Shown: positions 11,601-42,111 of the stretch, in pieces | How the letters are laid out: each line of letters begins with the position of its first letter | Numbering within the stretch: position 1 is the stretch's first letter | Source: Haliotis rubra | Taxonomy: Eukaryota | Reading direction: 5' to 3' | DNA length: 64,000 bases | NCBI RefSeq assembly: GCF_003918875.1 | Contig: NW_025765603.1 | Span: 682,001 to 746,000 of the forward strand | Notes under the pieces: model-generated | What the model was told of the DNA's origin: nothing | The model's input: the letters and a program-made list of their open reading frames with translations, nothing else | The model's database searches: none | Made by a program: the position numbers and the translations under genes

Positions 11601-14600
11601 AGCTAACACCTTAACCCCTACGCTTCACCACAAGGTCCAAAGGGTCTAGATTTGTTTTTTTCCCATAAACATGTTTCTTAATATGAATAAACTGATTGAA
11701 ATTAAATCACATGCAAAACTTCAGAACGTAAGCCTGTGCTTACCTAATAGCTTGACTGACTTAGTTTGGTTTTACGCCGCTTTTAGCAATATTCCAATAA
11801 CATCACGGCGGGGGACACCAGAAATGGGCTTCACACATTGTACCTATGTGGGGATTCGAACCCGGGCCTTCGGCGTGACGAGCCAACGCTTTAACCATTA
11901 GGCTACCCCACCGCCCCCTAATAGCTTGACCATTTACAAATGATCTATAGATATCTGGCGGCTCAACCCTGGTCTCATATTGAAACAAGCTACACACCCT
12001 AGAATGAATATGGTATCGCCCCCCTACCTTCCGTTTCCGGCATGTAGAAGAGCCGACAGCCACACCTTTGGGAAATTTGCACCATGGAACATTCCACTTG
12101 ACATGTCTCGATTGAGTAGTGAGGGAAGTACTTCAGGCTAGGGCACTGACATTCTCCGTGTGGTTTAGGAAGATTATTAATCTACAACAAAAAATATTAG
12201 ATCATAAGGTGATTATAAAGAGCCGTAGGATTGTATTACGAACGTCCGGCACACTCCGTTTATGGCCTGTCCAGTCGTCCAGTCGTCCAGTCGTCCAGTG
12301 TGTCTCTATTTTTCGTGGGTTTGAATCTCAGATTCTGATGGTCGGTTTGCCTGGTCTTTACTTCATCATGGAAATGTTAGAAGTTTCAAGTTACTCGCGT
12401 CTAACACCTGCATGTCTTCCGGGTTTCCTTCGACAATATGGTGGTCCTGGATACGGAAGGTGAAGGGGTTATGTTGCTTGGCAACGATCCGAAATGGTCA
12501 CTTTGAATTGACACGTCGTGTTAGCGTGATAACAAGAGTGTGCTGAACACAAATTGTTTCATGTCTGATAGTTAGATTCGAACGCGCGATGAACTGATCT
12601 TGCATCGTCTGAATGGCGCAACTCTTGAGACTGATTTGCAACAAGCAACAGTTCACTACTCCGTGGTACGTTGCTAAGATACCGAGATGCTGACAGCTTA
12701 CCGAGATGAGCTGCATGCCGACGAATGAATGTGTCCCCGTGGGTAGGGCGATACCGAGCTCCTGCACCTTGGGGAACTGTCTGTGGTCATGGATGAGGAT
12801 CTTGACCCCTGCGGCGTCGTGGGGCCCGGGCATGTACTCGTACTGCTCCACATTGAGCGTCAGGGACAGCCCCGTTCTCAGCTCCTGGACACACAGATCA
12901 GGTCGAAATTAATGAATATGCATTGTTGGTGTGTGTATGTGCTTGTTTCTTTGTTTGCGTACCTATTATCATATAGTTGTATTCCGGCGACATGAAAATA
13001 ATCGCGCCTGTACAAGTGAGTGAGTTTAGTTTTACGCCGCACACAGCAATATCCCAGCTATATGGCGGCGGTCTGTAAATGATCGAATCTGAACCAGAGA
13101 ATCCAGCGATCAACAGCATGAGCAACTGGGATACGATGACGCGTCAACCAATTCATCGAGCTTGACCACCCGATCCCAGTAGTCTTAGCATGGGATACTG
13201 AAGATCAATCCTAGCCCGGATTTTAATCGGTATGTCTGGACAAGACAATTAAGAGGTGAGGTGAGGTGAAATTGGGTTTAACGTCGTGCTTGAGAATATT
13301 TCGCTCATATGACGACGTGCATGCGTGTGTATGTGTATGTGCGGTTGCTTGTACTAGCCCAGACAGCTGGTTTTATAGTGCTAGCCCACTGAGATACCAT
13401 GCCGCAGTGAAGCATGAATACCCCACTCAGACACATTATACTGACTCCGAGCCGACCAGTCCTTGTTGTACCCATTAATACCGAGCGCCAGGCAGGGACC
13501 AAGAAGTACCATATTTTAACGAACCCTCGACCTTCCGCTCTCCGGGCGGACGCTCTAACCACTACACCACGGAGGCGGTCAGATCTTGTTTGAAATGAGG
13601 CAGACAATTAAGAGATAGATATTGTCGGGGTGCACTGACTCCAAGAACCAAATCAACAATCTTGACCACTCGATCCATTCAATTAACTATAACATCCATT
13701 GCTCTGGACCAATTCGAACCGTTGTCCTCACGAGTTACATTAAATTATATTGAACTGCTTCATTGTGACTGACAAGACACAGCATGTTTGCAGCTTGTAA
13801 GTCAACGAGCATGGTTAGTGTGCCAACCAGTAAAACAGTCTAGCCTTGGAGCTGATCTAATTGTCTCCGGATCCTGCTCTTTCTTGGGGACGTAATTATG
13901 CAAATATAATTGCGGTGCCTTAGATGACTGAAACAGGTAGTGGCATGCCATCTGTTCATAAGGTACAAGCAATTTTCCTTTGAATTGAGTAACTGCTTTG
14001 TAAGTGGACATTGACCAACCTGCTTCTGTGACGTGAAGACGGTCTCGGTCAGATGTGTTTTGGTCAGGTAGGTTGAACGAGAAACAGACGCCGTGATCTG
14101 TCATTATCTCAGTGAAGTTGAAGATACCGCAGGGTTCCCCTCGCCACTGACAACTGTGGGAAGGGAATATATAACTATCATACAGGGAGCTATTGTCGGT
14201 GTGTGAGAGAGTATAAAAAGCAGTGAATGTCAACTAATACATCATTAATGTGAAGCTAATGTTCGCCTTTCAAAAGGTCAAAAAATTGTATTTGCTCAAG
14301 TTGCATTGTGAGTGGGTATTATATTCACTGTACACGTGGTATGTGTAGAATGTGAGGTAGAATGTGAGTATGTGTGCGTACGTGCGTGTGTGTGTAGCCT
14401 TAAGTCTTACTATATGATTAAGTGAGTACAATTTTACGCCGCTTTTAGCAATATTCCAGCAATATCACGGCGGGGGACACCAGAAAATGGGCTTTACACA
14501 TTGTACCCATGTGTGGAGTCGAACCCGGGTCTTCGGCGTGACGAGCGGACGCTAAAACCACTAGGCACCCCCACCGCCCGCTGACTATATGACGCCTGTT

Positions 14601-17600
14601 TGTAAATAAACAACTCTGGGCCTGATAATCCAGTGATTAACATCATGAATCTCGATCTACTCAATGGGGATACGATGACATGCATCCCCAAAGTCTCCTG
14701 ATCCATAATCTCGCCTCATAGACCAGCACAGGTTGCTGGGAGGCGTGTGCTTCCCACGGGGTCATGCAGATTGAAGGTCGCGGGTCGAAGGCAATCACCA
14801 CCCGCATAATCGACTCGATGGTATGCGTCTGAAAAATTAAAGATCCTAATCGCCCCAATCGTGTTCGAATCAGGTGCAAGTGTGCAAATGCGATTACCTG
14901 ACGATCATGTCCTCCATTGCATGAGCTGTGCTGGCGTACAGATGCCTCAAGGTCATGTTCGTGGCGTTTCTCCTCTCAAGGTCAAGGACAGACAATCTTC
15001 TGCCTCCAGTAAACATGGCGGTCAAAAATTCATAGTATCCAAGCTCTGCTGCCTTGCTGGCACTGTTTTAATAGAGACCGCTAAATGTTAGATACCGAAC
15101 GCGTTGGTGAGAATCGAGTATCACACATTGTCGTGATAGAATATATATTCAAGTGTCATTACGCGTTTGATTTACATCAGCAATTGCACACGTCATTCTT
15201 TTAAGGGAAGTACGGTACTGAAATAATAAAATAATTTTAAAAAGTAATAAAAGGCGTAACTATGGCACAAAACTCTTGCGCTATGTACCCACCGGAAAGT
15301 ATTCTGGTTGCAGATGCTGATCGTAGGAAATAAGAGAGTTTTGTTGTATTTGACGTTGAGGTTGACAGTGACAGGGTGGTTGTAGTAGTAGATGACGCGT
15401 TCGACAATCTGGTAGCTCATGACGGTAACACACGTCACTGTTAGAAGAAGCCATAGCAGTCTGGAAGAAGAGTGAATGAGTGAGTTTAGTTTTACGCCAC
15501 GTTTAGCAATACTCCAATAGTGTCACGGTGGGGGGACACCAGAAAATGGCTTTACACATTGTACCTATGTGGGGAATCGAACCGTGGTCTTTGGTGTGAA
15601 GAGCCAACGCCTTCACCACTAGACCACTGCCCCGGTCGACTGACTGACTGACTGACTGAGTTTGGTTTTACGCCGCTTTAAGCAATATTCCAGCAACATC
15701 ACGGCGGGGAACACCAGAAATGGGCTTCACACATTGTACCCATGTTGGGATTCGAACCCGGGTCTTCGGCTTGACAAGCTAACGCTTTAACCACTAGGCT
15801 ACCCCAACGCCCCGCCCCGGTCGAGAACCAGAAGAATTTACATGTTGAGCATACGTTACAACTAAGATTACAGACCCGTGAAGACCCGGGTTAGAATATT
15901 GATCTTCGGTAACCTTTGCTTGTCGTAAGAGGCGACTAACGGGATCGGGTGGTCAGACTCGCTGACTTGGTTGACACATGTCATCGGTTCCCAATTGCAC
16001 AGATCGATGCTCATGCTGTTGATCACTGGTCCAGGCTCGATTATTTACAGACCGCCACTATATAGCTGGAATATAGGGTACCGATTCTAGTATACTTTGT
16101 GGGGAATAGAATCTTATCCGCAAAGTCTGAGAGAAAGTACAATATATATTATATCCAAATAACACAATCCGCCATAGACTGGTGCCAGCAGCCAGCAATA
16201 ATAATATGCATATACATAAAAGTATAATTCTCAAGCTCAAGGGTCGAGGCGAGACCTTCCCACGAAGGTGGCTTTGTGAGGTGTTATGTGTTATGTGATA
16301 TGTGATATATGATGTGTGATATATGATATGTGATATGTGATAAATATGATAAAGAAAGAAAACGCTTGTCCACAAATAAGGTCCTATACCTTATTGAAAG
16401 TTGCATTCGATGCTATAACTAGTCAATCAGTTTTCTAGAAAGGTAAATCATTACACTGGCATTCCAGACAACGAACATTTGCTGAAACACAATGTTGAGA
16501 ACTTCTAAAGGATCTTAACAGAAACATAAACATGAGATTGTTTCAAGATGTTTGAAGGAAGTATCCCTTTGTAACATATATTTTAACTGCAAATTTAACA
16601 TAGGATATAAGCAATAACACCAGATATTACTTACGACTACTTGGGTTACCAGTCCCTATTTGAAGAAGTCATTATTCGACGATGCCGTATTGGCCATTGA
16701 AGATACATACATGAATATTTGTAGGAATGTTAGGGCCATCAATTGTGTCTTCCTAGTGATGAGAGAATNNNNNNNNNNNNNNNNNNNNNNNNNNNNNNNN
16801 NNNNNNNNNNNNNNNNNNNNNNNNNNNNNNNNNNNNNNNNNNNNNNNNNNNNNNNNNNNNNNNNNNNNNNNNNNNNNNNNNNNNNNNNNNNNNNNNNNNN
16901 NGGGAGGAGAGAGTGGGGGGAGGGAGACAGAGAGGAGGGAGAGAGAGAGGGGGAGCGCGAGACAGAGGGGAAGGAGAGCGAGAGGGAGAGAGAGAGACAG
17001 TGGGAGAGGGAGAGTTATCAGTCTATGCGCTAGTTACCCCATGACATCCTCCCTGACACTGACATGGTTGTGAGCTGTGGAATGTCATAACTTCATTCAT
17101 CGATGCAGTGTTTTCATTAAGAACGCTTCGCGAAAGCAACAAGAAAGCTGTCCTGTCAATTGTCACGATTTTGACATTTGTCAGGCGCCTTGCAGAAAAA
17201 GCCACACAAAATGCATACCAAGGATACGTTATGAACACTTCTCATAAAACCATACTTCCACCCTGATGTTGGGCGGGATATGTCCCCAATACATCCTTGT
17301 ACAATGGGTACCAGGTACTCGTGTTCAGCCATCGGACCCAACAGCCTGGGGAACCATTCAACCATTATTGATCCGGTCCATATTCATTATGTACAGCCCC
17401 CCCACGGTGACATTAGTGAATGGAAACCACTTTCACTCGCTCCATTTCTAAATGACACACTATGATACTGGCATCATGCAAGCTCATGTGCAACTGTAAA
17501 AATGGTATGAAAAATATAAAACAGATTTGGGGGGAACACTTTACTTGATACGGCGTAAAACAACATTCCCCACGCTAAACTGTTAGATATCTGTCAGCGC

Positions 17601-24750: not shown

Positions 24751-25996
24751 ATATTTCTTTTCTACTCTTTTGTGTTTTGTGATGTGTTTATACCGAGGGT
24801 AACCATTTGGAAAATTCAAATTCCGTCACAGTTTTCGATCCTGATCAATATAACCTGTGACTTTATACATTTAACTGACAGTATTGTGAATACCGAAAAC
24901 ATGGCAAAAATGCAGACTTCACTAATGAAACGTGTGTTTGACTACCCACTGTTGTCGGTTCATTGTTCTCGCCGCGGATGGGGGCGATGGCGTAGCCTAG
25001 TGGTTAAAGCGTTCGCTCGTCACGCCGAAGACCCGGGTTCGATTCCCAACATGGGTACATTGTGTGAAGCCCATATCAAGTGTCCCCCGCCGTGATATTG
25101 CTGGAATACTGCTAAAAGTGGCGTAAAACCAAGCTCACTCACTCGCCACGGTATGGCCGGGTTCACCACTGAGAACACAACTGTTCCAACCATCTAGCTA
25201 ATGATGCTGGGCTATGTTAAGTTTGATGTAGTGAATTTGCTGACTATGTATCATACCGTATTGCGTCATAAGGAAACCTACTAACTTGATGCTGTGCTAT
25301 TCCAGATTCCTCCTATGTTAATATGTTCACTCCAGGTTTTATTTGGTAGATTATGGTGAACATGTTAAGGATTTTAATTCAAAGTATACTCATGCCAATA
25401 ATGGTTGTCACCCCCTTAAAAAAATTTAATTGGAGAGGGTGTGGGTGGGGGTGTGAGGTGTTTGGGGGTTGGGAGGGAGGGGTTTGACAACCATTATTGG
25501 CATGAGTATACATTCGAAAGGATATAGGAAAGCAGGAAAATAGGAAAATGCAAATGACAGTATTTTCAAGTCAAGCTGTAATTATGATACTGCAAAACGA
25601 CGACCATGAAAGAAGCATGGCTATAGGGCCGTCGTCAACTTCTCACTATTTGGTATAATATTTGCGGCAACTTGGGAGATTTTACATCCAAACGTTGCAT
25701 TCTCGCGTTGGTGGCTTTACACAAACAGGGCTATAAAGCGCACGAGAATGCAAAAAGGCCAGGATGCGAGATTTATGGCTAATGAAATGTGTATACTGGA
25801 CAAAGGAGCGGAGGCATTATGGTGTACTGAAGACTCTGGTCAACCCGTTAGAAAGACCGCTCGCAGTTCATCAGTTATCTTCTTGTCCCAGATCTGAACA
25901 TGCCTTCTTGCTAGAATATTGTGTGGCGTTTAACGTCAAACATTCAACTGATCCATCAAAGCGCACGTAAAATGTTAATGTATGAGGAGATTTTAT

Positions 25997-26136
25997 TTAA
26001 TTTCCTGGAGGGTAACAGCAGAAGGTGAAGGTGCTGTCGCCGCACTGACTGGAGTCCCTGTTGCCGCCACAAGCCAGGGCCGACAGCAGAGATTGGCATC
26101 TGCCCCCCATTCTCTCACAGGCTTCCATAGGTGGAT
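25997..26136 (-). CDS. Triple-defensin-like gene exon 4 (domain 3, stop)
   Basis: ccctacag| ...C-X6-C-X8-C-X8-C-X7-CC YPPGN*; AATAAA at 25992-25997. Confidence 0.9.
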
Positions 26137-29100
26137 CTGTAGGGGGAATACAGGGGGAGTGAGTTATCAGTAGATGTAGCCACTCCTTCGAGAACCTATT
26201 GTATTACAGTCAACTCTCGTTAATCCGACACTCGTGGTTGCAGAGAAATATGTCGGATTAACGAAAATGTCGGATTAATGTATTTGTGTGAAAATATCAA
26301 TGTTTACTAAATGTCATGATCTTCATACTGTTGCATGCATATCAGAAATGGTAGATCTAGTTATCTTCATCGTATGTAAAAATATTCACAGAAATAAAAA
26401 ATAATATGTCTTCTGACGACTGAAATACCCTTGGCCAATTGGTGGCCGTAGCTGTAATTTGAACCCTTGGCGCTTGAAAACTCTTCCGTATTACAAAATA
26501 CTTTTATGAGCGACAGGAATATGTTTGGTACTGTTTAAAATTGATCTTCAGCATATTACGATTGTCGTAAGGAGCGAGTAACAACCCATCTCGCTGACCT
26601 CCTATGCCAGTGGGGCGGTGGGGTAGCCTAGTGGTTAAAGCGTTGGCTCGTCACTCTAAAGACCCGAGTTCGATTCCCCATATGGGTACAATGTGTGAAG
26701 CCCATTTATGATGTCCCCCCGCTGTGATGTTGCTGAACTATTGCTAAAAGCGGCGTAAAACCCAACTCACTCACTCACTCACTCCTATGCCAGTTGCTCA
26801 GATCGACGCTCATGCTATCAATCACTAGACTTTGGGTTCAAACATTTACAGACCCTGACTTATAGCTGGAATATTGCTGGCTGGTGTTAAACATGAGTCA
26901 AACAACTAAACAATAACGACAGACATTCAGTCCTAAGTTAGGAGGGTACCAATAGCGTTAGATTGTCCAAGTGCACAAGTATTTGTCTGTAAATTCAGTG
27001 CATGTGCACCTATGGCACGGGCTATAAGTTGATCTTTAACTCCTGTTACCTTCTGGTATCTGTTACCTTCTATCTGTTACCTTCTGGTATCTGTTACCTT
27101 CTATCTGTTACCTTCTAGTATCTGTCTCTGAAGTATGTTCTACGTTTATTCATGTTCATTGCATCAACTATTACATCACATTCAACAATGTTAACGTCAC
27201 TTTTCTCCGCCATTTTGATGAAAATACTCACCGGAAGAAGACAACGTTTAGGGGAGGTAACTCTAAAATATTTAATAAAGGGAGATACCAACATTTTTGG
27301 GAACGTCGAAAAGACAGTTAATAACTTAATACGGAGAGAGAGAGAGAGTTGGAAATGATGACGTCACGTCCGAACAAATAAAAGAAAACATGATGGAAAA
27401 CAGCTATTTAAACTATGAATGAAGACATAATACACTGGATGACTGGGCCCCGGATGGCGCCGTTAGATACTGGAAATCCGGGAGATTTCACTGCAGACAG
27501 TATAGTCTGGATTAACGGGGTTTCAACATTCATGGCGATATGGATCACAAATTTATCTTTAATTTCTAAAAGGTAATATAATGGTATATGCTTGTTTGAT
27601 GATAACTTTTGAGTCTTAAATGTTTTTGGAGACAGTCTCTTGTCGTTGATTACATTTAGGAACAGACTGAGCGTTAAAGCAACCATGCAGAATTTCAGCC
27701 ATTGAGGGTTTATGGATTTGCGATGTCGGCCCATTGTCACTGAAACTTAACCATTTTGTTTGTCAAAATGTGTGAGTGAAACAAGATAGTAATGACAATT
27801 CTATGTACACTGTTTCTTATGGAATACTCGAAGTGACATTCTCGCGATTTTAACCTTTCGAATGGAGTCAAATATGCCAACCTTGAGCGTCCTTGCGCAC
27901 ACAACAGTAGTTGCCCTGGGCTTGTTGACCGCAGTCCGGGGTCCCCTGAATCTCCTCCCCTCCACATACCAGGGCCGACTTGACATTAAGGCAGTGACCC
28001 CCGAGTGATGCGCAGGATTCTGTAACAGTGGGTGAGTGTCTAACAGGGCAAAGTGAGGGGGGTGAATGATTGACTGGGTGAGTGTCGAACTGGGCAGGAT
28101 GAGGGGGTGAATGATTGACTGGGTGAGTGTCTAACTGGGCAGGATGAGGGGGTGAATGATTGACTGGGTGAGTGTCTAACTGGGCAGGATGAGGGGTGAA
28201 TGATTGACTGGGTGAGTGTCTAACTGGGCAGGATGAGGGGTGAATGATTGACTGGGCTGAGTGTCTAACTGGGCAGGATGAGGGGTGAATGATTGACTGG
28301 GTGAGTCTAACTGGGCAGGATGAGGGGTGAATGATTGACTGGGCGAGTGTCTAACTGGGCAGGATGAGGGGGTGAATGATTGACTGGGCGAGTGTCTAAC
28401 TGGGCAGGATGAGGGGGTGAATGATTGACTGGGTGAGTGTCTAACTGGGCAGGATGAGGGGTGAATGATTGACTGGGCGAGTGTCTAACTGGGCAGGATG
28501 ATGGGGTGAATGATTGACTGGGCGAGTGTCTAACTGGGCAGGATGAGGGGGTGAATGATTGACTGGGTGAGAGTCTAACTGGGCAGGATGAGGGGTGAAT
28601 GATTGACTGGGTGAGAGTGTCTAACTGGGCAGGATGAGGGGTGAATGATTGACTGGCAGGATGAGGGTGTCTAACTGGGCAGGTCTAACTGGGAGGATGA
28701 GGTGAATGATTGACTGGGCGAGTGTCTAACTGGGCAGGATGAGGGGTGAATGATTGACTGGGCTGAGTGTCTAACTGGGCAGGATGAGGGGTGAATGATT
28801 GACTGGGTGAGTGTCTAACTGGGCAGGATGAGGGGTGAATGATTGACTGGGTGAGAGTGTCTAACTGGGCAGGATGAGGGGGTGAATGATTGACTGGGCG
28901 AGAGTGTCTAACTGGGCAGGAGGATGAGGGGTGAATGATTGACTGGGCGAGTGTCTAACTGGGCAGGATGATGGGGTGAATGATTGACTGGGCGAGTGTC
29001 TAACTGGGCAGGATGAGGGGTGAATGATTGACTGGGTGAGTGTCTAACTGGGCAGGATGAGGGGTGAATGATTGACTGGGTGAGTGTCTAACTGGGCAGG

Positions 29101-32100
29101 ATGGGGGTGAATGATTGACTGGGCGAGAGTGTCTAACTGGGCAGGATGATGACTGAGGGGTGAATGATTGACTGGGTGAGTGTCTAACTGGGCAGGATGA
29201 GGGGTGAATGATTGACTGGGCGAGTGTCTAACTGGGCAGGATGAGGGGTGAATGATTGACTGGGTGAGTGTCTAACTGGGCAGGATGAGGGGTGAATGAT
29301 TGACTGGGTGAGTGTCTAACTGGGCAGGATGAGAGGGGTGAATGATTGACTGGGTGAGTGTCTAACTGGGCAGGATGAGGGGGTGAATGATTGACTGGGT
29401 GAGTGTCTAACTGGGCAGGATGAGGGGTGAATGATTGACTGGGTGAGTGTCTAACTGGGCAGGATGATGAGGGGGTGAATGATTGACTGGGGGTGAGAGT
29501 CTAACTGGGCAGGATGAGGGGGTGAATGATTGACTGGGCGAGTGTCTAACTGGGCAGGATGAGGGGTGAATGATTGACTGGGTGAGTGTCTAACTGGGGC
29601 AGGATGAGGTGGGTGAATGATTGACTGGGTGAGTGTCTAACTGGCAGGCAGGATGAGGGGTGAATGATTGACTGGGTGAGAGTCTAACTGGGCAGGATGA
29701 GGGGTGAATGATTGACTGGGTGAGTGTCTAACTGGGCAGGATGAGGGGTGAATGATTGACTGGGCGAGTGTCTAACTGGGCAGGATGAGGGGTGAATGAT
29801 TGACTGGGGAGAGTGTCTAACTGGGCAGGATGAGGGGTGAATGATTGACTGGGTGAGTGTCTAACTGGGCAGGATGATGGGGTGAATGATTGACTGGGTG
29901 AGTGTCTAACTGGGCAGGATGAGGGGTGAATGATTGACTGGGCGAGAGTGTCTAACTGGGCAGGATGAGGGGGTGAATGATTGACTGGGTGAGTGTCTAA
30001 CTGGGCAGGATGAGGGGTGAATGATTGACTGGGTGAGTGTCTAACTGGGCAGGATGAGGGGGTGAATGATTGACTGGGCGAGTGTCTAACTGGGCAGGAT
30101 GAGGGGTGAATGATTGACTGGGTGAGTGTCTAACTGGGCAGGATGAGGGGGTGAATGATTGACTGGGTGAGAGTCTAACTGGGCAGGATGAGGGGTGAAT
30201 GATTGACTGGGCGAGTGTCTAACTGGGCAGGATGAGGGGTGAATGATTGACTGGGTGAGTGTCTAACTGGGCAGGATGATGAGGTGAATGATTTACTGGG
30301 CGAGTGTCTAACTGGGCAGGATGAGGGGGTGAATAATTGACTGGGTGAGTGTCTAACTGGGCAGGATGAGGGTGAATGATTGACTGGGCAGAGTGTCTAA
30401 CTGGGCAGGATGAGGGGGGAATGATTGACTGGGCAAGGAGTGTCTAACTGGGCAGGATGAGGGGTGAATGATTGACTGGGCGAGTGTCTAACTGGGCAGG
30501 ATGAGGGGGTGAATGATTGACTGGGTGAGTGTCTAACTGGGCAGGATGAGGGGGTGAATGATTGACTGGGTGAGTGTCTAACTGGGCAGGATGAGGGGTG
30601 AATGATTGACTGGGTGAGTGTCTAACTGGGCAGGATGAGGGGGTGATTGAATGATTGACTGGGTGAGAGGTGAATGAACTGGGGAGCAGGCACTGGGCAG
30701 GATGAGGGGTGAATGATTGACTGGGTGCGAGTGTCTAACTGGGCAGGATGAGGGGTGAATGATTGACTGGGCGAGTGTCTAACTGGGCAGGATGAGAGGG
30801 TGAAGGATTGACTGGGTGGATACTGAGTGTCTAACTGGGCAGGATGAGGAGTGAATGATTGACTGGGGTGAGTGTCTAACTGGGCAGGATGAGGGGGTGA
30901 ATGATTGACTGGGCGAGAGTGTCTAACTGGGCAGGATGATGAGGTGAATGATTGACTGGGTGAGTGTCTAACTGGGCAGGATGAGGGGGGGTGAATGATT
31001 GACTGGGCAGAGTGTCTAACTGGGCAGGATGAGGGGTGAATGATTGACTGGGCGAGTGTCTAACTGGGCAGGATGAGGGGTGAATGATTGACTGGGTGAG
31101 TGTCTAACTGGGCAGGATGAGGGGTGAATGATTGACTGGGCGAGTGTCTAACTGGGCAGGATGAGGGGGTGAATGATTGACTGGGTGAGTGTCTAACTGG
31201 GCAGGATGAGGGGGTGAATGATTGACTGGGCGAGTGTCTAACTGGGCAGGATGAGGGGGTGAATGATTGACTGGGCGAGTGTCTAACTGGGCAGGATGTG
31301 GGGGTGAATGATTGACTGGGTGAGTGTCTAACTGGGCAGGATGATGGGGGTGAATGATTGACTGGGCGAGTGTCTAACTGGGCAGGATGATGGGGGTGAA
31401 TGATTGACTGGGTGAGAGTCTAACTGGGCAGGATGAGGGGGTGAATGATTGACTGGGCGAGTGTCTAACTGGGCAGGATGAGGGGTGAATGATTGACTGG
31501 GCGAGTGTCTAACTGGGCAGGATGAGGGGTGAATGATTGACTGGGCGAGGGTCTAACTGGGCAGGATGATGAGGGTGAATGATTGACTGGGTGAGTGTCT
31601 AACTGGGCAGGATGTGGGGGTGAATGATTGACTGGGTGAGTGTCTAACTGGGCAGGATGAGGGGGTGAATGATTGACTGGGTGAGAGTCTAACTGGGCAG
31701 GATGAGGGGGTGAATGATTGACTGGGCGAGTGTCTAACTGGGCAGGATGAGGGGTGAATGATTGACTGGGTGAGTGTCTAACTGGGCAGGATGAGGGGTG
31801 AATGATTGACTGTGTGAGTCTAACTGGGCAGGATGAGGGGTGAATGATTGACTGGGTGAGAGTCTAACTGGGCAGGATGAGGGTGTGAATGATTGACTGG
31901 GCAGAGAGTGTCTAACTGGGCAGGATGAGGGGTGAATGATTGACTGGGTGAGGTGTCTAACTGGGCAGGATGATGAGGTGAATGATTTGACTGGGCGAGT
32001 GTCTAACTGGGCAGGAGGATGATTGGGGTGAGGATGATTGACTGGGCAGAGAGTGTCTAACTGGGCAGGATGAGGGGGTGAATGATTGACTGGGTGAGTG

Positions 32101-35100
32101 TCTAACTGGGCAGGATGAGGGGTGAATGATTGACTGGGTGAGTGTCTAACTGGGCAGGATGAGGGGGTGAATGATTGACTGGGCGAGAGTGTCTAACTGG
32201 GCAGGATGAGGGTGTGAATGATTGACTGGGTGAGGGTGTCTAACTGGGCAGGATGAGGGGTGAATGATTGACTGGGCAGAGTGTCTAACTGGGCAGGATG
32301 AGGGGTGTGAATGATTGACTGGGTGAGTGTCTAACTGGGCAGGATGAGGGTGAATGATTGACTGGGCGAGAGAGTCTAACTGGGCAGGATGAGGGGGTGA
32401 ATGATTGACTGGGCGAGAGAGTGTCTAACTGGGCAGGATGAGGGGTGAATGATTGACTGGGCGAGTGTCTAACTGGGCAGGATGATGAGGGTGAATGATT
32501 GACTGGGTGAGTGTCTAACTGGGCAGGATGAGGGTGAATGATTGACTGGGTGAGTGTCTAACTGGGCAGGATGATGGGGTGAATGATTGACTGGGTGAGA
32601 GTGTCTAACTGGGCAGGATGAGGGTGAATGATTGACTGGGTGAGTGTCTAACTGGGCAGGATGAGTGGGGTGAATGATTGACTGGGTGATGGAGAGTGTC
32701 TAACTGGGCAGGATGAGGGGGTGAATGATTGACTGGGTGAGTGTCTAACTGGGCAGGATGAGGGTGAATGATTGACTGGGTGAGTGTCTAACTAAAGGCA
32801 GGATGAGGGGTGAATGATTGACTGGGCGAGAGTGTCTAACTGGGCAGGATGAGGGGGTGAATGATTGACTGGGTGAGGGTCTAACTGGGCAGGATGAGGG
32901 GTGAATGGATTGACTGGGCAAAGTGTCTAACTGGGCAGGATGATGGGGGTGAATGATTGACTGGGCGAGGTCCTAACTGGGCAGGATGAGGGGTGAATGA
33001 TTGACTGGGCGAAGTGTCTAACTGGGCAGGATGATGAGGGGTGAATGATTGACTGACTGGAGAGTGTCTAACTGGGCAGGATGAGGGGGGTGAATGATTT
33101 ACTGGGCAGAGAGTGTCTAACTGGGCAAGATGAGGGTGTGAATGATTTACTGGGCGAAGTGTCTAACTGGGCAGGATGAGGGTGATGGAATGATTGACTG
33201 GGTGAGTGTCTAACTGGGCAGGATGAGGAGTGAATGATTGACTGGGTGAGTCTAACTGGGCAGGATGAGGGTGAATGATTGACTGGCTGGGTGAGTGTCT
33301 AACTGGGCAGGATGAGGGTGAATGATTGACTGGGTGAGTGTCTAACTGGGCAGGATGAGGGGTGAATGATTGACTGGGTGAGTGTCTAACTGGGGCAGGA
33401 TGAGGGGGTGAATGATTGACTGGGTGAGAGTGTCTAACTGGGCAGGATGAGGGGTGAATGATTGACTGGGTGAGTGTCTAACTACCCAAGGCAGGATGAG
33501 GGGTGAATGATTGACTGGGCGAGTGTCTAACTGGGCAGGATGAGGGTGAATGATTGACTGGGGGTAGGAGTGTCTAACTGGGCAGGATGAAGAGGTGAAT
33601 GATTGACTGGATGAGTGTCTAACTGGGCAGGATGAGGGAGTGAATGATTGACTGGGTGAGTGTCTAACTGGGCAGGATGAGGGGTGAATGATTGACTGGG
33701 TGAGTGTCTAACTGGGCAGGATGAGGGGTGATGAGGTGAATGATTGACTGGGTGAAGAGTGTCTAACTGGGCAGGATGAGGGGGGTGAATGATTGACTGG
33801 GTGGAGTGTCTAACTGGGCAGGATGAGGGGGTGAATGATTGACTGGGGCGAGGGTCTAACTGGGCAGGCATGAGGGGTGAATGATTGACTGGGCGAGGAG
33901 TCTAATGATTGGCAGGATGAGGAGGTGAATAACTGGACTGGATGAGTGTCTAACTGGGCAGGATGAGGGGGTGAATGATTGACTGGGCGAGTGTCTAACT
34001 GGGCAGGATGGATGGGGGTGAATGATTGATTGACTGGGCGAGTGTCTAACTGGGCAGGATGAGGGGGTGAATGATTGACTGGGTGAGAGTCTAACTGGGC
34101 AGGATGAGGGGTGAATGATTGACTGGGTGAGTGTCTAACTGGGCAGGATGTGGGGGTGAATGATTGACTGGGCGAGTGTCTAACTGGGCAGGATGAGGGG
34201 TGAGTGATTGACTGGGTGAGAGTCTAACTGGGCAGGATGAGGGTGTGAATGATTGACTGGGCGAGTGTCTAACTGGGCAGGATGTGGGGGTGAATGATTG
34301 ACTGGGTGAGCGTCTAACTGGGCAGGGTGAGGGGTGAATGATTGACTGGGCGAGAGTGTCTAACTGGACAGGATGTGGGGGTGAATGATTGACTGGGAGA
34401 GTGTCTAACTGGGCAGGATGAGGGGGTGAATGATTGACTGGGTGAGAGAGTCTAACTGGGCAGGATGAGGGGTGAATGATTGACTGGGTGAGTGTCTAAC
34501 TGGGCAGGATGATGAGGGTGAATGATTTGACTGGGCGAGTGTCTAACTGGGCAGGATGAGGGGTGAATAATTGACTGGGCGAGTGTATAACTGGGCAGGA
34601 TGAGGGTGTGAATGATTGACTGGGTGAGTGTCTAACTGGGCAGGATGAGGGGGTGAATGATTGACTGGGTGAGTGTCTAACTGGGCAGGATGAGGTGGTG
34701 AATAATTGACTGGGCGAGTGTCTAACTGGGCAGGATGAGGGTGTGAATGATTGACTGGGTGAGTGTCTAAGTGGGCAGGATGAGGTGGTGAATAATTGAC
34801 TGGGTGAGTGTCTAACTGGGCAGGGTGAGGGGGTGAATGATTGACTGGGTGAGTGTCTAACTGGGCAGGACGAGTGAGTGAATGAAACACGATCTGGAAT
34901 CTGGAATGTGTGGGGTAACAATACACGAATTGGTTTTCAGCAACCCACACTTATCGTTAGAAGCGACTAACGGAAAGAATCGGGTTGTCAGTCTCGCTGA
35001 CTTCGTCGACACATGTCCCGATACATGTCATCGTTTCCCAGTTACGTTGATCGATGTTCATGCTGTTGATCACAAAATTGTCTGGTCCAGACTCGATTGT

Positions 35101-37839
35101 TTACAGACCGCCGCAATATAGCTGGAATATTGCTGAGTGCGGGGTTAAACAACAAACAAACAAAATAAATGCAGTAGGCTGTCACACATTTATTCTCCAC
35201 GACAACACAGGACAGAAGGTGAGGTGAGGTGAGGTGAGGTGAGGTGAGGTGAGGTGAGGTGAGGTGAAATGGGGTTTAACTTCGTGCTTGAGAACATTTC
35301 GCTCATATGACGACATGCATGCGTGTGTATGTGTATGTGCGGCTGCTTGTACTAGCCCAGACTGAAGCTGGTTTTATAGTGCTAGCCCACTGAGATACCA
35401 TGCCGCAGTGAAGCATGAATACCCCACTCAGACACATTATACTGACTCCGAGCCGACCAGTCCTTGTTGTACCCATTAATGCCGAGCGCCAGGCAGGGAC
35501 CAACAAGTACCACATTTTAACGTCTTTTGGTATGACGCGGTCGGGGATCGAACCCGCGACCTTCCGCTCTCCGGGCGGAACACAGGACAAAAGACAACAC
35601 GAGACTGACGTGCATCATACTCAGGTCTGATTGGTTTACACTATATTACGTGTCACGTATTGTGTGATCTGCAGGTATTGCTGATTTTAAAGGGACCGTC
35701 TCATGTTTTCATCTAACAGTGAGTGAGTGAGTTTAGTTTTACGTTGCTATCAGCAATGTTCCAGCAATATCACGGCGGGTAACACCAGAATTGGGCTTCA
35801 CACATTGTGCCCATGGGGGGAATCAAACCCGGGTCTTCGGCGCGACGATGGAACGCCTTAACCACTAGGTTACCCCGCCGCGCCGTTTACATCTAACAAG
35901 AGTGAGTGAGTGAGTTTTAGATTTACGCCGCTTTTTGCAATATTCCAGCAATATCACAGCGGGGGACACCAGAAATGGGCTTCACACATTGTATACATAT
36001 GGGGAATCGAACCCGGGCCTTCGGCGTTACGAGCGAACGCTTTAACCACTAGGCTACCCCAAACCCAACAAGAGATAATCACTTACTAGTTTTGTGAGGT
36101 ACACAGCAATAGTCTTCTGAGGAACATCCTCGGTTGTCGTAGTCACGTGTGCCGTCACAGAGGATGTCTGAGGCGTTTGGGAGACATCTTCCCTTTAATT
36201 CTGAACATGACGCCGTCTGTGCATGCGCTAAAAATTAATGATATTGCATTTTCCGAAAATTGCACGACACGTGTCTATTTAACAGATTCAGTGATTCTTA
36301 TACGTGCTGTAAAGCGCCATAATTCTACATTGCCTCCCTTAGTGGGGGCAGGATCAGCTAGATCCTAATCAATAGTATTTCTCTGGATCCACATCTATAG
36401 AACAGACGGATGGTATGGGCAGACTAGTGGTTATCCATTTGATCTCCAGGACTAAAATCCGCTTGAGCAAAGTGAACATCGGGTTCCTGGTATTGCGGAT
36501 ATGATATCGCACGAATAATGATATACACAATGCCAAATAAATGCGATAGACCAGTTGACCAGGGTGTCCGCTGGCATCGGCAGTCGACCCAGGACGTCGG
36601 TTGAAGGATCAAATCCCCACCCACTCTGTCCGTGTTGTTATATTTATTTTATAAATAAACAACGACAATAGATATATCTTTCCAATTTTACTTGGAGTAA
36701 ACCTTAAGCCTAGAATCACTACAGAGTTTTGCTGTAACTGAAATTCTGTTTAAATTAGCGTCAAACCACATTCCCTCATGCACTTGACCAACGAAGAACC
36801 CACTAAGAGATTGTCGTCCAGTACCCATGCCCGTAACAGACAACTGGTAATGTAGGATTTGGTGTTTGGCACGTTGACTTGATTGAATCAGGTGATCGTA
36901 CTCCCGGGTACGTCATCGATGCTCATTGTGTCAACTGCTGAATTGTCTGGCCCAGACTCAATTACTTACAGAACGCCGTCACATGGGTGGAATATTGCTG
37001 AGCGAGACGTTAATCAACCAACCAGCAACGATAAACTTTCAAATATCGGTATGAGTATCTGCCCTCCTCTGACAACGGTGAGGTGAGGTGAAATTGGGTT
37101 TTACGTCGTGCTTGAGAACATTTCGCTCATATGACGACATGCATGCATGTGTATGTGTATGTGCGGCTGCTTGTACTAGCCCAGACTTAAGCTGGTTTTA
37201 TAGTGCTAGCCCACTGAGATACCATGCCGCAGTGAAGCATGAATACCCCACTCAGACACATTATACTGACTCCGAGCCGACCAGTCCTTGTTGTACCCCA
37301 TGTCTTTTGGTATGACGCGGTCGGGGATCGAACCCGCGACCTTCCGCTCTCCGGGCGGACCTCTGACAACAAGTTTATGATCAAATACACAGAAATTATT
37401 GCAAAAGGACGATTTTTCAAACTTGAAAATCTGACTTCACGGAAGTCCATCACCTGAGAACAGATTTTGCCATATGTCAACACAGTCCCTTATCAATGGT
37501 TTCACGAAACAATCAGATTGGGTCATATATTTGGCACAAATCAAATATACCAGAAGGTTCCTGAAAACATGTTGATAGGATTTTTGGACAAAGATTCGCA
37601 ATACTATACACAATAGAGTGTTGTTATAATTCCTCGGGTGTGGGAACTGATCACGGTCACGTGATATCAGTTTCCAAACAGTTTATCTCTTCTCAATCAT
37701 ATGCAGATCACGAGTGTTTAAATGTACCTCTTCATACTTTGTGCATTGAGGCCAATTTGGTTAGATAAATGTACTTACATATTTTCAAGCAACTGCAGCA
37801 ACAGACGCTGAGAACGACAATTACCGTGAATCCTGTCAT
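25997..37839 (-). CDS. Secreted cysteine-rich protein with three tandem beta-defensin-like (C-C-C-C-CC) domains, 159 aa, 4 exons
   Basis: Exons 37779-37839, 36087-36227, 27882-28019 and 25997-26136 with phase-1 GT-AG introns join to 480 nt: MTGFTVIVVLSVCCCSCLKISHA-QTASCSELKGRCLPNASDILCDGTRDYDNRGCSSEDYCCVPHKT-KSCASLGGHCLNVKSALVCGGEEIQGTPDCGQQAQGNYCCVRKDAQ-DPPMEACERMGGRCQSLLSALACGGNRDSSQCGDSTFTFCCYPPGN*. AATAAA overlaps the stop. Confidence 0.88.
26611..26783 (+). mobile_element. SINE family A copy nested in a family B SINE
   Basis: TSD CCTATGCCAGT; family B sequence continues on both sides. Confidence 0.85.
27882..28019 (-). CDS. Triple-defensin-like gene exon 3 (domain 2)
   Basis: ttacag| ...C-X6-C-X8-C-X10-C-X8-CC... 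|GTTGGC; 138 nt. Confidence 0.88.
28030..34870. repeat. ~44-bp G-rich satellite, about 150 copies, in intron 2 of the defensin-like gene
   Basis: Unit GGGTGAGTGTCTAACTGGGCAGGATGAGGGGTGAATGATTGACT. Confidence 0.98.
35217..35578 (-). mobile_element. SINE family C copy with long (GGTGA)n tail
   Basis: TSD ACACAGGACARAAG. Confidence 0.85.
36087..36227 (-). CDS. Triple-defensin-like gene exon 2 (domain 1)
   Basis: tttttag| ...C-X6-C-X8-C-X10-C-X5-CC... |GTAAGT; 141 nt. Confidence 0.88.
37779..37839 (-). CDS. Triple-defensin-like gene exon 1 (signal peptide)
   Basis: ATG...MTGFTVIVVLSVCCCSCLKI T|GTAAGT, a consensus donor; hydrophobic core. Confidence 0.78.
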
Positions 37840-38096
37840 ATCTACTGATACGGCGAGATAGTGGACCTACCAGCAAGGTGAAGGTCGGTAGATGTAGGAC
37901 ATGTACAGTTTGCGGGCGGATTAGGCTGGCGTTCTGAAGTATTTCCAAACAGAATATATCTTATGATAAGCTTCTAAACTGTACTTGTAATGAGCGCCTG
38001 TGTTAGCACCGTGCCAGTGTCTTGTCCCATTGTCGGGACTGCTGGTGTCTCTTCTGTGCGAGTGTGTGTTGAATATGCTTGGCTTATGTACATATC

Positions 38097-39240
38097 GAGA
38101 CTGTGTCTGTGTCGGGACTGTGTCTGTGTCGGGACTGTGTCTGTGTCGGGACTGTGTCTGTGTCGGGACTGTGTCTGTGTCGGGACTGTGTCTGTGTCGG
38201 GACTGTGTCTGTGTCGGGACTGTGTCTGTGACTGTGTCTGTGTCGGGACTGTGTCTGTGTCAGGACTGTGCCTGTGTCGGGACTGTGTCTGTGTCAGGAC
38301 TGTGCCTGTGTCGGGACTGTGTCTGTGTCAGGACTGTGTCTGTGTCAGGACTGTGTCTGTGTCAGGACTGTGTCTGTGTCGGGACTGTGTCTGTGTCGGG
38401 ACTGTGCCCTGTGTGTCGGGACTGTGTCTGTGTCAGGACTGTGTCTGTGTCGGGACTGTGTCTGTGTCGGGACTGTGCCTGTGTCGGGACTGTGTGTGTC
38501 TCAGGACTGTGTCTGTGTCAGGACTGTGTCTGTGTCGGGACTGTGTCTGTGTCGGGACTGTGTCTGTGTCAGGGACTGTGTCTGTGTCGGGACTGTGTCT
38601 GTGTCTGGAGTGTGCCTGTGTCGGGACGGTGCCTGTGTCGGGACTGTGTCTGTGTCGGGACGGTGCCTGTGTCTGTGTCGGGACTGTGTCTGTGTCGGGA
38701 CTGTGTCTGTGTCGGGACGGTGCCTGTGTCGGGACTGTGTACGTATCGGGACTGTGTCTGTGTCGGGACGGTGACTGTGTCGGGACTGTGTACGTATCGG
38801 GACTGTGTCTGTGTCGGGACTGTGTCTGTGTCGGGACTGTGCCTGTGTCGGGACTGTGTCTGTGTCGGGACGGTGCCTGTGTCTGTGTCAGGACTGTGTC
38901 TGTGTCGGGACTGTGACTGTGTCGGGACTGTGTCTGTGTCGGGACTGTGCCTGTGTCAGGAATGTGCCTGTGTCAGGACTGTGTCTGTGATGGGACTGTG
39001 TGTGTGTCTGGAGTGTGCCTGTGTCTGTGTCGGGACTGTGTCTGTGTCGGGACGGTGACTGTGTCGGGACTGTGTGTGTGTCGGGACTGTGCCTGTGTCG
39101 GGACTGTGTGTGTGTCTGGAGTGTGCCTGTGTCGGGACTGTGCCTGTGTCGGGACGGTGCCTGTGTCTGGACTGTGTGTGTGTCTGGACTGTGTGTGTGT
39201 CGGAACTGTGTGTCGGGACGGTTTCTGTGTCGAGACTGTA
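38097..39240. repeat. 17-bp minisatellite (GGGACTGTGTCTGTGTC) upstream of the defensin-like gene
   Basis: Visible periodicity; source of spurious Cys/Val-rich ORFs. Confidence 0.97.
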
Positions 39241-39873
39241 CCTGCATAGTGCCTATGTGGAGATATACTATTCACGCGTGGATACAGGTTTTTGGAACGG
39301 CCGTTGGGACTCACGTATTATTCAGCGTGAGAAATCCACTAATTGTGGATCCACTAATGAAATCTACAAACATCTCCTTGACCCACGCAAATAATACATC
39401 CTAGGTTCAGTGATACAAAGCTATTATTGTCAATTAATATGTGAAAAACTGTGAAAAACGATCTACGTTCATGAGAAATATTTAAACACATTGACGATCC
39501 TTTCAGTCAGGAAATTTATTATTATCTATAAATATAACCGATATTTCTCTTTAGTTGAAGCTACTTTCGGTCCAAAGCCTTATGCTTCAGCATGTTTCCA
39601 AATCTTTGCCAAATTAATGTATATTTTGCTCAGCTCATGACTTGCAATTTGCCATTTCACTCATGCCCCTGCATCTGAAACCTTGTACCAGTTAAGTGGT
39701 TAACGGATTATCAAAGCGGCGTAATAAATGCTGCCTTTATTTGTGATTAGATGCACTGGTCATAGGCTCGAATCCCAGATTCAATGGTCTTTCAGTGGTA
39801 AACGTTTCCCCAAGGTCTAAGACCTGCTGCTCACCCATGATGAATTTGTTTACAGTGAACGCACTTGCTGAAC

Positions 39874-40974: not shown

Positions 40975-42111
40975 TTACGTTGAAGTTACTGCTTGCTGTT
41001 TTTTATCCCCGTCTCCTGACCTGTTCTCGTTCTTGCTTTTCATTTTAGCCTCAGAGACATACAATCTACAAAACACACCCTCTGGCCAGAATCTGGCCAG
41101 TACTTTTTGGGAGTCGTCACGTGCTATATCCACCAGCATTGTGTACGTACATTGTCCGGCCTTACACCGCCATGTCCTCATGTGACGTACATGTATCAAC
41201 CGTACACCCCTGCTGGCGGCATATCTCGCCACAGCTGTACTTACAACGTCAAAGCTTGCTTGTCCTCCCACACGGGACAACACATACTGTTCCGTTTTTA
41301 TGTTCTCCTGTCCATCTCGATTTGGTTCTTTTATAGCCGGCTTACTTTCTTTTGCGTGAAAGTGGTGACTTTCTACGCTCCCAAATTGAAAAGCATGAGT
41401 ATCATTACGCGAAGGTATATCAGCAACTGGGAGCTTTTGTGTCCGTGAATGTCTACCATCATTTTGACGTGGACAATCTTGAGGACGGGTAATGTGAGTT
41501 ACACTTTGTCCGACAGATGTCGTTTCAGGAGTGAAACAGTTTTCACTGCCTTGTGCTCCCCCTGTTTTAGTTCCAATGTTGTTAAGGGAGACAACTGCAG
41601 AGGAGGAAGGTTTTGTTCTCTGGAGCACAAGGTCTACCTTGCCTGTCATGACGTCTAATTTGCGGAAATGTTCAGTCATGGCGGCGATTTCCGACTGATA
41701 TTTCATCACTTTTATCCCCAGTTCTTTGTTTTCATTCTTCTGCAGCTTAATTTCGTACCTCATCTTCTGTTCATTCACCCGGTATGCATACAACTGTTCG
41801 TTGAGGATTCGGTTGGTGTCCTCTCCTCGGCTTATCGTGTCCTTTAAAGCCTGTATTTCTGCATCTTTGCTCTTTACTAACATGTCAAGCTTGTCAGCGA
41901 GGAGTGGCATGTTTTCACTGAATTTATGTTTGATCTCCATAATGGCTTTCAACACCGAGACCTGGTCCATGTGGTCATTGTGGATCCTTGTCTTGGCGCA
42001 CACAATATCGTTAGGAATCTGGTAGCTGTTCCCATCGGCGCCACCGCAAGACTTGCTCAGCTCGTGGTTCCGCGGGGCAGTCATATTGCGATGAACAGGA
42101 ACCAGTAGCAT
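40975..42111 (-). CDS. Intronless 378-aa ORF resembling ORF1p of CR1/L2-group non-LTR retrotransposons (coiled coil plus C-terminal RRM-like domain)
   Basis: Long heptad region (LADKLDMLVKSKDAEIQALKD...FRKLD), low-complexity linker, C-terminal ...SQKVLARFWPEGVFCRLY motif typical of invertebrate LINE ORF1; no ORF2 follows. Confidence 0.65.
   Translation of the reverse strand: MLLVPVHRNMTAPRNHELSKSCGGADGNSYQIPNDIVCAKTRIHNDHMDQVSVLKAIMEIKHKFSENMPLLADKLDMLVKSKDAEIQALKDTISRGEDTNRILNEQLYAYRVNEQKMRYEIKLQKNENKELGIKVMKYQSEIAAMTEHFRKLDVMTGKVDLVLQRTKPSSSAVVSLNNIGTKTGGAQGSENCFTPETTSVGQSVTHITRPQDCPRQNDGRHSRTQKLPVADIPSRNDTHAFQFGSVESHHFHAKESKPAIKEPNRDGQENIKTEQYVLSRVGGQASFDVVSTAVARYAASRGVRLIHVRHMRTWRCKAGQCTYTMLVDIARDDSQKVLARFWPEGVFCRLYVSEAKMKSKNENRSGDGDKKQQAVTST

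Follow-up and report, generated by a model that had tools for sequence, protein, structure and literature searches.

Proteins that contain more than one domain of the beta-defensin fold are already known. AvBD11 (gallinacin-11) is a double beta-defensin, the tick carboxypeptidase inhibitor (TCI, MEROPS I68) is a secreted, non-antimicrobial protein with two tandem beta-defensin-fold domains, and the helofensins of Heloderma lizards are vertebrate venom-gland proteins made of several beta-defensin-type modules, each encoded by its own exon. In molluscs, big defensins are to our knowledge the only trans-defensins described; they have 3 residues between the second and third cysteines (C2-C3) and 13-14 residues between C3 and C4. 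Here we analyse LOC124271873, a gene of the blacklip abalone Haliotis rubra located at positions 25997-37839 on the minus strand of a 64,000-nucleotide stretch of DNA (positions 682,001 to 746,000 of contig NW_025765603.1, assembly GCF_003918875.1), hereafter the window, whose coordinates are used throughout unless another contig or locus is named. We are confident that it is a real gene encoding three beta-defensin-like modules and that it belongs to a gastropod family. Neither the gene model, which is in public annotation, nor the fold class is new; what appears to be new is the family itself, which is non-cationic, contains one to three domains with a distinct cysteine spacing and follows a conserved phase-1 exon plan in the genes that were mapped.

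The abalone protein has several features in common with vertebrate beta-defensins, and with AvBD11 especially: six cysteines ending in a CC pair, six residues between C1 and C2, and a glycine in the G-x-C2 position. A three-stranded sheet with an N-terminal helix, predicted in the abalone model (Z 3.7 to both hBD-2 and CpoBD13), is likewise common to the two groups, as is the layout of a signal-peptide exon followed by a phase-1 intron and a domain exon, while the tandem arrangement of domains recalls AvBD11. It differs from beta-defensins in having eight rather than four residues between C2 and C3, an additional short helix in the predicted structure, an acidic instead of a cationic chain, a score that does not attain the PF00711 threshold, a gastropod host and three domains carried by separate exons.

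Compared with big defensins, the protein lacks both the hydrophobic N-terminal domain and the dibasic propeptide site, spaces its cysteines otherwise and carries its domains in tandem; a search with the big defensin profile PF14862 gave nothing above cut-off anywhere in the H. rubra genome (1.378 Gb in 2855 contigs). TCI is found among both the fold and the profile matches, but the similarity is weak (Z 2.1-3.0, E 1.2), and TCI has two domains instead of three and comes from another lineage; its Pfam family, PF10468, in which a C-terminal tail plugs the active site of the carboxypeptidase, is weakly matched by one of the 36 family domains that we aligned, at E 0.2. The helofensins appear to share the building principle of the abalone gene. 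Because of its C2-C3 spacing of eight, the lack of Pfam membership, the missing big-defensin N-terminal domain and its acidity, the abalone protein, strictly speaking, belongs neither to the beta-defensins nor to the big defensins and represents a new family within that fold class.

Gene structure and conservation of LOC124271873

The coding sequence is distributed over four minus-strand exons. Exon 1 (37839-37779, 61 nt) carries the ATG start codon and most of the predicted signal peptide, and ends in phase 1 at a GTAAGT donor. Exon 2 (36227-36087, 141 nt; acceptor side tttttag, donor GTAAGT) encodes the end of the signal peptide and module D1, exon 3 (28019-27882, 138 nt; acceptor side ttacag, donor GTTGGC) encodes module D2, and exon 4 (26136-25997, 140 nt; acceptor side ctacag) encodes module D3 and the TAA stop codon at 25999-25997, which overlaps an AATAAA polyadenylation signal on the same strand (25992-25997). 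Introns 1 (36228-37778), 2 (28020-36086) and 3 (26137-27881) are all of the GT-AG type and all in phase 1; the second is 8.1 kb long and rich in repeats, and the third holds a repeat resembling a short interspersed nuclear element (SINE) at approximately 26611-26812. Once spliced, the exons amount to 480 nt or 159 codons. Since every intron is in phase 1, modules could be added by exon duplication with the reading frame kept.

Each of exons 2 to 4 carries a single module of about 45 residues with six cysteines, and all three modules end in CC and display G-x-C at Cys2. The cysteine cores extend over 36207-36103 in D1 (spacing 6/8/10/5), 28014-27901 in D2 (6/8/10/8) and 26119-26015 in D3 (6/8/8/7). 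When all six frames of the 64-kb window were scanned with a regular expression, the cysteine pattern turned up in exons 2, 3 and 4 alone, so that it is not a product of chance or background. Residues 4-18 form a hydrophobic core near the N-terminus of the product, and a signal peptide is likely to be cleaved between SHA and Q, within exon 2. The mature chain that would result has 136 residues, is opened by module D1 and ends in YPPGN/YPPGQ; it is acidic, with 16 D/E versus 12 K/R and an isoelectric point (pI) of 5.0.

The spliced product is identical, letter for letter, to the RefSeq protein XP_046562985.1, annotated as 'uncharacterized protein LOC124271873' of Haliotis rubra. This identity independently confirms the gene model and also shows that the gene is not hidden from public annotation, contrary to what a preliminary description of the window had claimed; the ortholog of Haliotis asinina is annotated as well. 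In most other respects that description was accurate. It had proposed an in-phase splice of four exons into 159 amino acids, and the exons lie exactly where it placed them; its three C-X6-C-X8-C-X8/10-C-X5/8-CC modules, one per exon with G-x-C at Cys2, were recovered in full, as were a hydrophobic N-terminus leading up to a probable A/Q cleavage site, kept in H. asinina, the acidic mature chain and the absence of a hydrophobic N-terminal domain of the big-defensin type. An NAS sequon that it had singled out lacks conservation, the H. asinina protein reading HAS at that place. The roles that it put forward (inhibitor, mucus or shell protein, channel modulator) are conjectural.

The H. asinina ortholog, XP_067658963.1, has 158 amino acids and is 86% identical along its full length. 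Its exon borders match those of H. rubra with one exception: the acceptor of exon 2 is shifted inwards by 3 nt, so that the product is one codon shorter. Between the two species the exons are 87-90% identical (90% for exon 1, against positions 10001-10061 of the H. asinina locus L009, and 87% for exon 3, against positions 12780-12917) versus 73-79% for the alignable intron, and the counterpart of the 8.1-kb intron 2 measures only 1.2 kb in H. asinina. The AATAAA signal overlapping the stop codon is also kept there, the exon ending in CAATAA followed by ataaat. The ratio of nonsynonymous to synonymous substitution rates (dN/dS) is 0.21 overall and 0.17 in the mature part, at a dS of 0.35-0.40, and the mature cysteines are conserved without exception (18/18); the protein is therefore under purifying selection. 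Synteny is maintained as well, with a 380-amino-acid gene upstream and an ASC/DEG-ENaC channel gene downstream in both species.

Predicted fold and distribution of the family

Structural models were compared by exhaustive alignment to 48,161 representative chains of the PDB, and matches with Z >= 2 were listed. The AlphaFold model of D3, for which a 36-row alignment served as input, has a predicted local distance difference test score (pLDDT) of 77; in it, an N-terminal helix leads into the first of three strands, and a short helix separates this strand from the other two. Fourteen chains matched this model, 13 of which have the beta-defensin fold. The best match was crocodile CpoBD13 (Z 3.7, root-mean-square deviation (rmsd) 1.7 A, 36 of 38 residues); human hBD-2 also reached Z 3.7 over 39 of 41 residues, and the others included AvBD11, crotamine, AvBD3, hBD-1, hBD-6, platypus defensin-like peptides (DLPs), an anemone SCRiP and TCI. 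With the full-length model of the ortholog (pLDDT 66), the beta-defensin fold accounted for 19 of the 21 chains listed, which covered D1 and D3 well and D2 weakly. Over both models the best Z scores were 3.7-3.9, with rmsd values of 1.7-2.4 A. As far as such predicted models allow, the weight of the comparison lies in the near-exclusivity of the match list, not in the size of Z.

Sequence comparisons are weaker. When the profile of 36 family domains was searched against PDB sequences, the C-terminal domain of AvBD11 came first at E 0.013, and eight of the nine matches have the beta-defensin fold with six cysteines in register, AvBD11, mouse beta-defensin 8 and TCI among them; a profile built from Haliotis domains only, hereafter the abalone-only profile, gave matches at chance level against the same sequences. 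The Pfam family Defensin_beta (PF00711) was matched by three of the 36 domains, the best at E 0.091, below its gathering score. Language-model neighbours include the Defensin_beta and I68 clusters with a score of 0.84, which can serve as a lead only. As to gene structure, big and beta defensins have in common, as a hallmark, a phase-1 intron just ahead of the cysteine domain (PMC7203481), and such an intron precedes every module of the window gene, the domains of the five tandem paralogs described below and those of the Lymnaea gene.

Based on the PDB fold comparison, the weak PDB and Pfam profile matches, the invariant G-x-C2 and the phase-1 introns, we regard the modules as beta-defensin-like in fold and probably homologous to that group. 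The same lines of evidence back the fold assignment of the preliminary description, although a pLDDT of 77 and Z scores of 3.5-3.9 are only moderate. If the fold is of this kind, the disulfides would be expected to pair C1-C5, C2-C4 and C3-C6. Foldseek did not reach significance: against the PDB it returned no match at E <= 0.001, its top rows being TCI, hBD-2 and crotamine at E ~6.

A search of 1.84 billion representative proteins with the abalone-only profile yielded 13 matching proteins (E 4e-48 to 7.6e-4). Besides the H. asinina ortholog (P0001) and the products of further Haliotis loci with more than one domain (P0008, P0012), these comprise three-domain proteins of Lymnaea stagnalis (P0003) and Biomphalaria pfeifferi (P0004, with P0014 of B. 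glabrata in the same cluster), a two-domain protein of Bulinus truncatus (P0010), a single-domain protein of Batillaria attramentaria (P0007), a 93-amino-acid repetitive protein (P0005), a three-domain protein from the TARA Oceans metagenome (P0009), a microbial-eukaryote-like protein with six domains and an NlpC/P60 domain (P0002), and bacterial-type lipoproteins with one or two domains (P0006, P0011, P0013). All the named matches are labelled uncharacterised or hypothetical.

The form typical of the family is a signal peptide followed by one to three modules of the pattern C-x3-GG-x-C-x8-C-x7/10-C-x5/8-CC, as seen in LOC124271873, LOC124271835, LOC106056234 and their relatives. In the alignment of 36 domains, C1, the glycine of G-x-C2 (36/36), C2, C3, C4 and the CC pair are invariant, and the C1-C2 spacing is six in all abalone modules. 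We verified the layout of one module per phase-1 exon for the window gene and its H. asinina ortholog, for the tandem array of H. rubra and for Lymnaea, whose gene has a signal exon followed by single-domain exons with all introns in phase 1. Most gastropod relatives, like the window protein, are acidic to neutral (pI 4-6.4). A domain tree, of low resolution because it is built on few columns, weakly places the heterobranch domains in one clade apart from those of abalone and joins abalone D3 to the tandem paralogs; this grouping hints that the three-domain architecture may have arisen more than once. The three domains of P0009 are encoded without introns on short marine contigs (L028:47-493 and L029:98-544, ENA / TARA Oceans), whereas the mapped gastropod genes have one exon per domain.

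We found no description of the family in the literature, which was searched by accession and by topic. The secreted proteins with one to three domains appear to form a family that extends across gastropods, has no name and is undescribed in the searchable literature. The preliminary description had spoken of a possibly undescribed molluscan multi-defensin family; its novelty appears to stand, the full-length match being an uncharacterised RefSeq protein and not a member of a characterised family, while its range is, on present evidence, that of gastropods rather than of molluscs as a whole.

Paralogs, distant relatives and surroundings of the gene

A profile census of the H. rubra genome gave nine clear domain exons: three in the window gene, five on contig C247 and one at C713:833890. 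The latter belongs to LOC124271835, a second family locus on the plus strand of the window's own contig (C713:832563-835576; loci L019-L022), about 115 kb from the window gene, whose exons are 100% identical to the RefSeq protein P0008; one more related exon lies 7 kb past this locus (842518-842673). The counterpart of P0008 in H. asinina, P0012, is likewise linked to the ortholog, and its locus has duplicated signal and domain exons.

The exons on C247 come from five single-domain genes of two exons each, arranged in tandem (C247:401501-425860; loci L010, L011, L012 and L014). In each of them a signal-peptide exon of 49 nt, conserved across the array and ending in GTAAGT, is separated by a phase-1 intron (0.7-2 kb) from a single domain exon that includes the stop codon. 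The precursors have 64-77 amino acids, and four of the five possess a seventh cysteine seven residues ahead of C1. Two exact products of the array were absent from the protein collection and a word-based search with one paralog brought up nothing similar, which suggests that the array has not been annotated. The signal peptide of these paralogs is conserved and their mature part changes fast (omega 0.4-1.3), a combination typical of effector families, with which they fit. Elsewhere in the genome, a minus-strand fragment resembling exon 4, and thus module D3 (C2745:1473008-1473166, locus L007), contains two in-frame TGA stops and is probably a decayed copy.

Farther afield, the abalone-only profile matches P0002 at E 7.5e-12; in this protein six domain copies stand ahead of the NlpC/P60 peptidoglycan hydrolase domain. 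P0016, found as a relative of P0002, has five repeats and a domain recorded under the lysozyme-type family PF18013. Together with P0015 and P0017, which have an unknown C-terminal domain in common, these are AT-rich, lysine- and asparagine-rich (K/N-rich) secreted metagenome proteins with five to eight domain copies, to which the product of L024:190-2103 can be added. The repeats of P0002 and P0016 have the GG-x-C and CC motifs of the abalone modules, but these proteins are strongly cationic (pI 10) with K/N-rich linkers, and many of the repeats have a C2-C3 spacing of five; P0002 mixes repeats with spacings of 5 and 8-9. Shape matches in the ESM Atlas were to NlpC/P60, lysozyme, Amidase_2 and LECT2-like proteins, and also to a chicken defensin cluster. 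One metagenome contig from JGI (68% G+C) encodes at L023:1516-1791 a bacterial-type lipoprotein with a signal ending in LAAC, a low-complexity linker and one copy of the family's six-cysteine domain at the end; the contig is densely coded and also carries carB (carbamoyl-phosphate synthase).

These similarities raise the idea that the abalone modules are part of an unrecognised cross-kingdom branch of trans-defensins, including gastropod proteins, hydrolase-linked repeats of microbial eukaryotes and bacterial lipoproteins. We consider this possible but rather unlikely. The defensins reported to date from outside animals are all cis-defensins (PMC11561630), and scans of 185,579 reference genomes with the single proteins P0006 and P0013 confirmed no bacterial relative. 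If true, the trans-defensin fold would not be confined to animals; it would either predate them or have moved through gene transfer, and would originally have served to target bacterial cell walls.

Some features around the gene are recorded for completeness. The window contains an intact minus-strand open reading frame (ORF) of 378 amino acids at 40975-42111, the DNA of which is 84% identical to the syntenic 380-amino-acid gene of H. asinina; the latter has no Pfam record. The SINE-like repeat of intron 3 (26611-26812) occurs at 88-95% identity in thousands of contigs of the four sequencing runs considered below, and the sequence GGGTTCGATTCCC, read in the loose ends at its edges, points to an element derived from a tRNA. 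A minisatellite with a ACACAGACACAGTCCCG-like unit of about 17 nt occupies 37990-39400, starting approximately 250 nt upstream of the start codon, and a second long minisatellite lies within intron 2 (33527-34950); both create long spurious ORFs on both strands. A run of 133 Ns (16769-16901) falls outside the gene. A scan for sigma-70 promoters upstream of exon 1 was discarded as inapplicable to a eukaryote.

Possible functions and significance

Taken as a whole, the data are best explained by a secreted, acidic protein with three modules of the beta-defensin fold that acts as a multivalent host-defence binder, a reading to which we assign a probability of about 0.55. The functional part, that is, a secreted multivalent binder serving host defence, is a more tentative proposal when judged by itself. 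The data directly show the gene structure, its conservation, purifying selection, membership in the family and the predicted fold, while secretion, the cleavage site, disulfide pairing, target and role are inferred. Each module would constitute a rigid, disulfide-locked binding unit, and three of them in tandem, devoid of any enzyme, would form a multivalent extracellular binder that may attach to the bacterial envelope or another microbial target instead of disrupting membranes in the manner of cationic peptides. The repeated association with cell-wall hydrolases in distant relatives suggests that the module targets the bacterial envelope, and the diversifying single-domain paralogs on C247 fit an effector family.

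Several points weigh against this reading. The idea of cell-wall binding would rest on domain associations found in distant relatives, and the acidic to neutral pI argues against a classical antimicrobial-peptide action and would suit a matrix protein or an inhibitor of enzymes just as well. The fold Z scores stay below 4, low in absolute terms albeit near the ceiling expected for chains of 40-45 residues, and AlphaFold may have been steered by the cysteine pattern. A Pfam search with the full protein returned nothing at E <= 10, and the sub-threshold matches found among the 36 domains (Defensin_beta, Myotoxins and Inhibitor_I68) all fall short of their thresholds. The C2-C3 spacing of eight in abalone modules departs from the 3-4 of big and beta defensins. 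As for expression, the read evidence comes from four small runs of one study, each with 5% of sampled words, aligned to positions 25500-28500: the reads cover only the SINE-like repeat and a short piece at 26246-26403, exons 3 and 4 having a depth of 0, and are uninformative on expression. No transcript-derived copy of the protein was found in a collection of 15 billion proteins.

The tandem modules could instead block a secreted or dietary enzyme. Proteins that have the beta-defensin fold and are not cationic offer precedents, namely the two-domain TCI as well as helianthamide and magnificamide, which inhibit alpha-amylase and come from sea anemones. Beta-defensin-like amylase inhibitors are indeed documented (PMC6835510, PMC10604346). 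TCI is among the fold matches, and the full-length model aligns with it over D1 and D2 (71 residues, 35% identity), but at an rmsd of 8.9 A; helianthamide matches D2 at Z 2.1, the N-terminal domain of TCI appears among the profile matches at E 1.2, Inhibitor_I68 is a weak Pfam match and the acidic charge is suitable. These matches are weak, however, and no better than those to true defensins, and the peptidoglycan-hydrolase link of the distant relatives points elsewhere, which leaves inhibition an unlikely role. A component of matrix, mucus or egg coat, contributing to shell biomineralisation or mucus structure, seems to us less likely still. Pelovaterin, a beta-defensin-like peptide of turtle eggshell, provides a precedent and its structure (2jr3) matches the D1 fold at Z 2.5; the mature chain and most gastropod relatives are acidic and the named animal sources are all shelled gastropods. 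Yet no proteomic or expression evidence for such a role was found in the literature, and the modules also have relatives in bacteria and, joined to cell-wall hydrolases, in microbial eukaryotes, where biomineralisation is irrelevant.

Two further explanations bear on the assignment itself. The C-C-C-C-CC pattern and small sheet might have arisen independently of beta and big defensins, with a model biased by that pattern. The absence of a significant Pfam match, a best PDB sequence match of only E 0.013, the C2-C3 spacing, the additional short helix that the model inserts between its first two strands, and relatives among bacteria and microbial eukaryotes, outside the accepted range of trans-defensins (PMC11561630), are all compatible with convergence. 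It is nevertheless improbable given the invariant G-x-C2, cysteines that line up with those of AvBD11, mouse beta-defensin 8 and TCI, a list of fold matches from which a single chain in 14 deviates and a phase-1 intron at the hallmark position, so that sequence, fold and gene structure agree. It is hardly credible that the gene is an annotation artefact or an unexpressed relic, for all the lack of reads on its exons in the four runs and of a transcript-derived copy: the frame is intact, splice sites and 18 cysteines are kept in two Haliotis species, dN/dS is 0.17-0.21 at a dS of ~0.4, the polyadenylation signal is conserved, and two RefSeq annotations contain independent gene models.

The weight of these findings is bounded by the prior public annotation of the gene and by the inferential nature of its function, for which a multivalent host-defence binder is our preferred candidate. 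Known families of antimicrobial peptides are regarded as scarce in gastropods. A conserved, non-cationic gastropod family whose members carry one to three beta-defensin-like domains would broaden the invertebrate range of this fold and provide new candidates for mucosal defence or enzyme inhibition, in a group of species that includes farmed abalone and the schistosome snail hosts Biomphalaria and Bulinus. With the phase-1 plan of vertebrate beta-defensin genes, the mapped members would offer a clean case of domain multiplication through duplication of phase-1 exons. Finally, the sequence link to hydrolase-fused repeats and bacterial lipoproteins, if true, would bear on the origin of beta-defensins.

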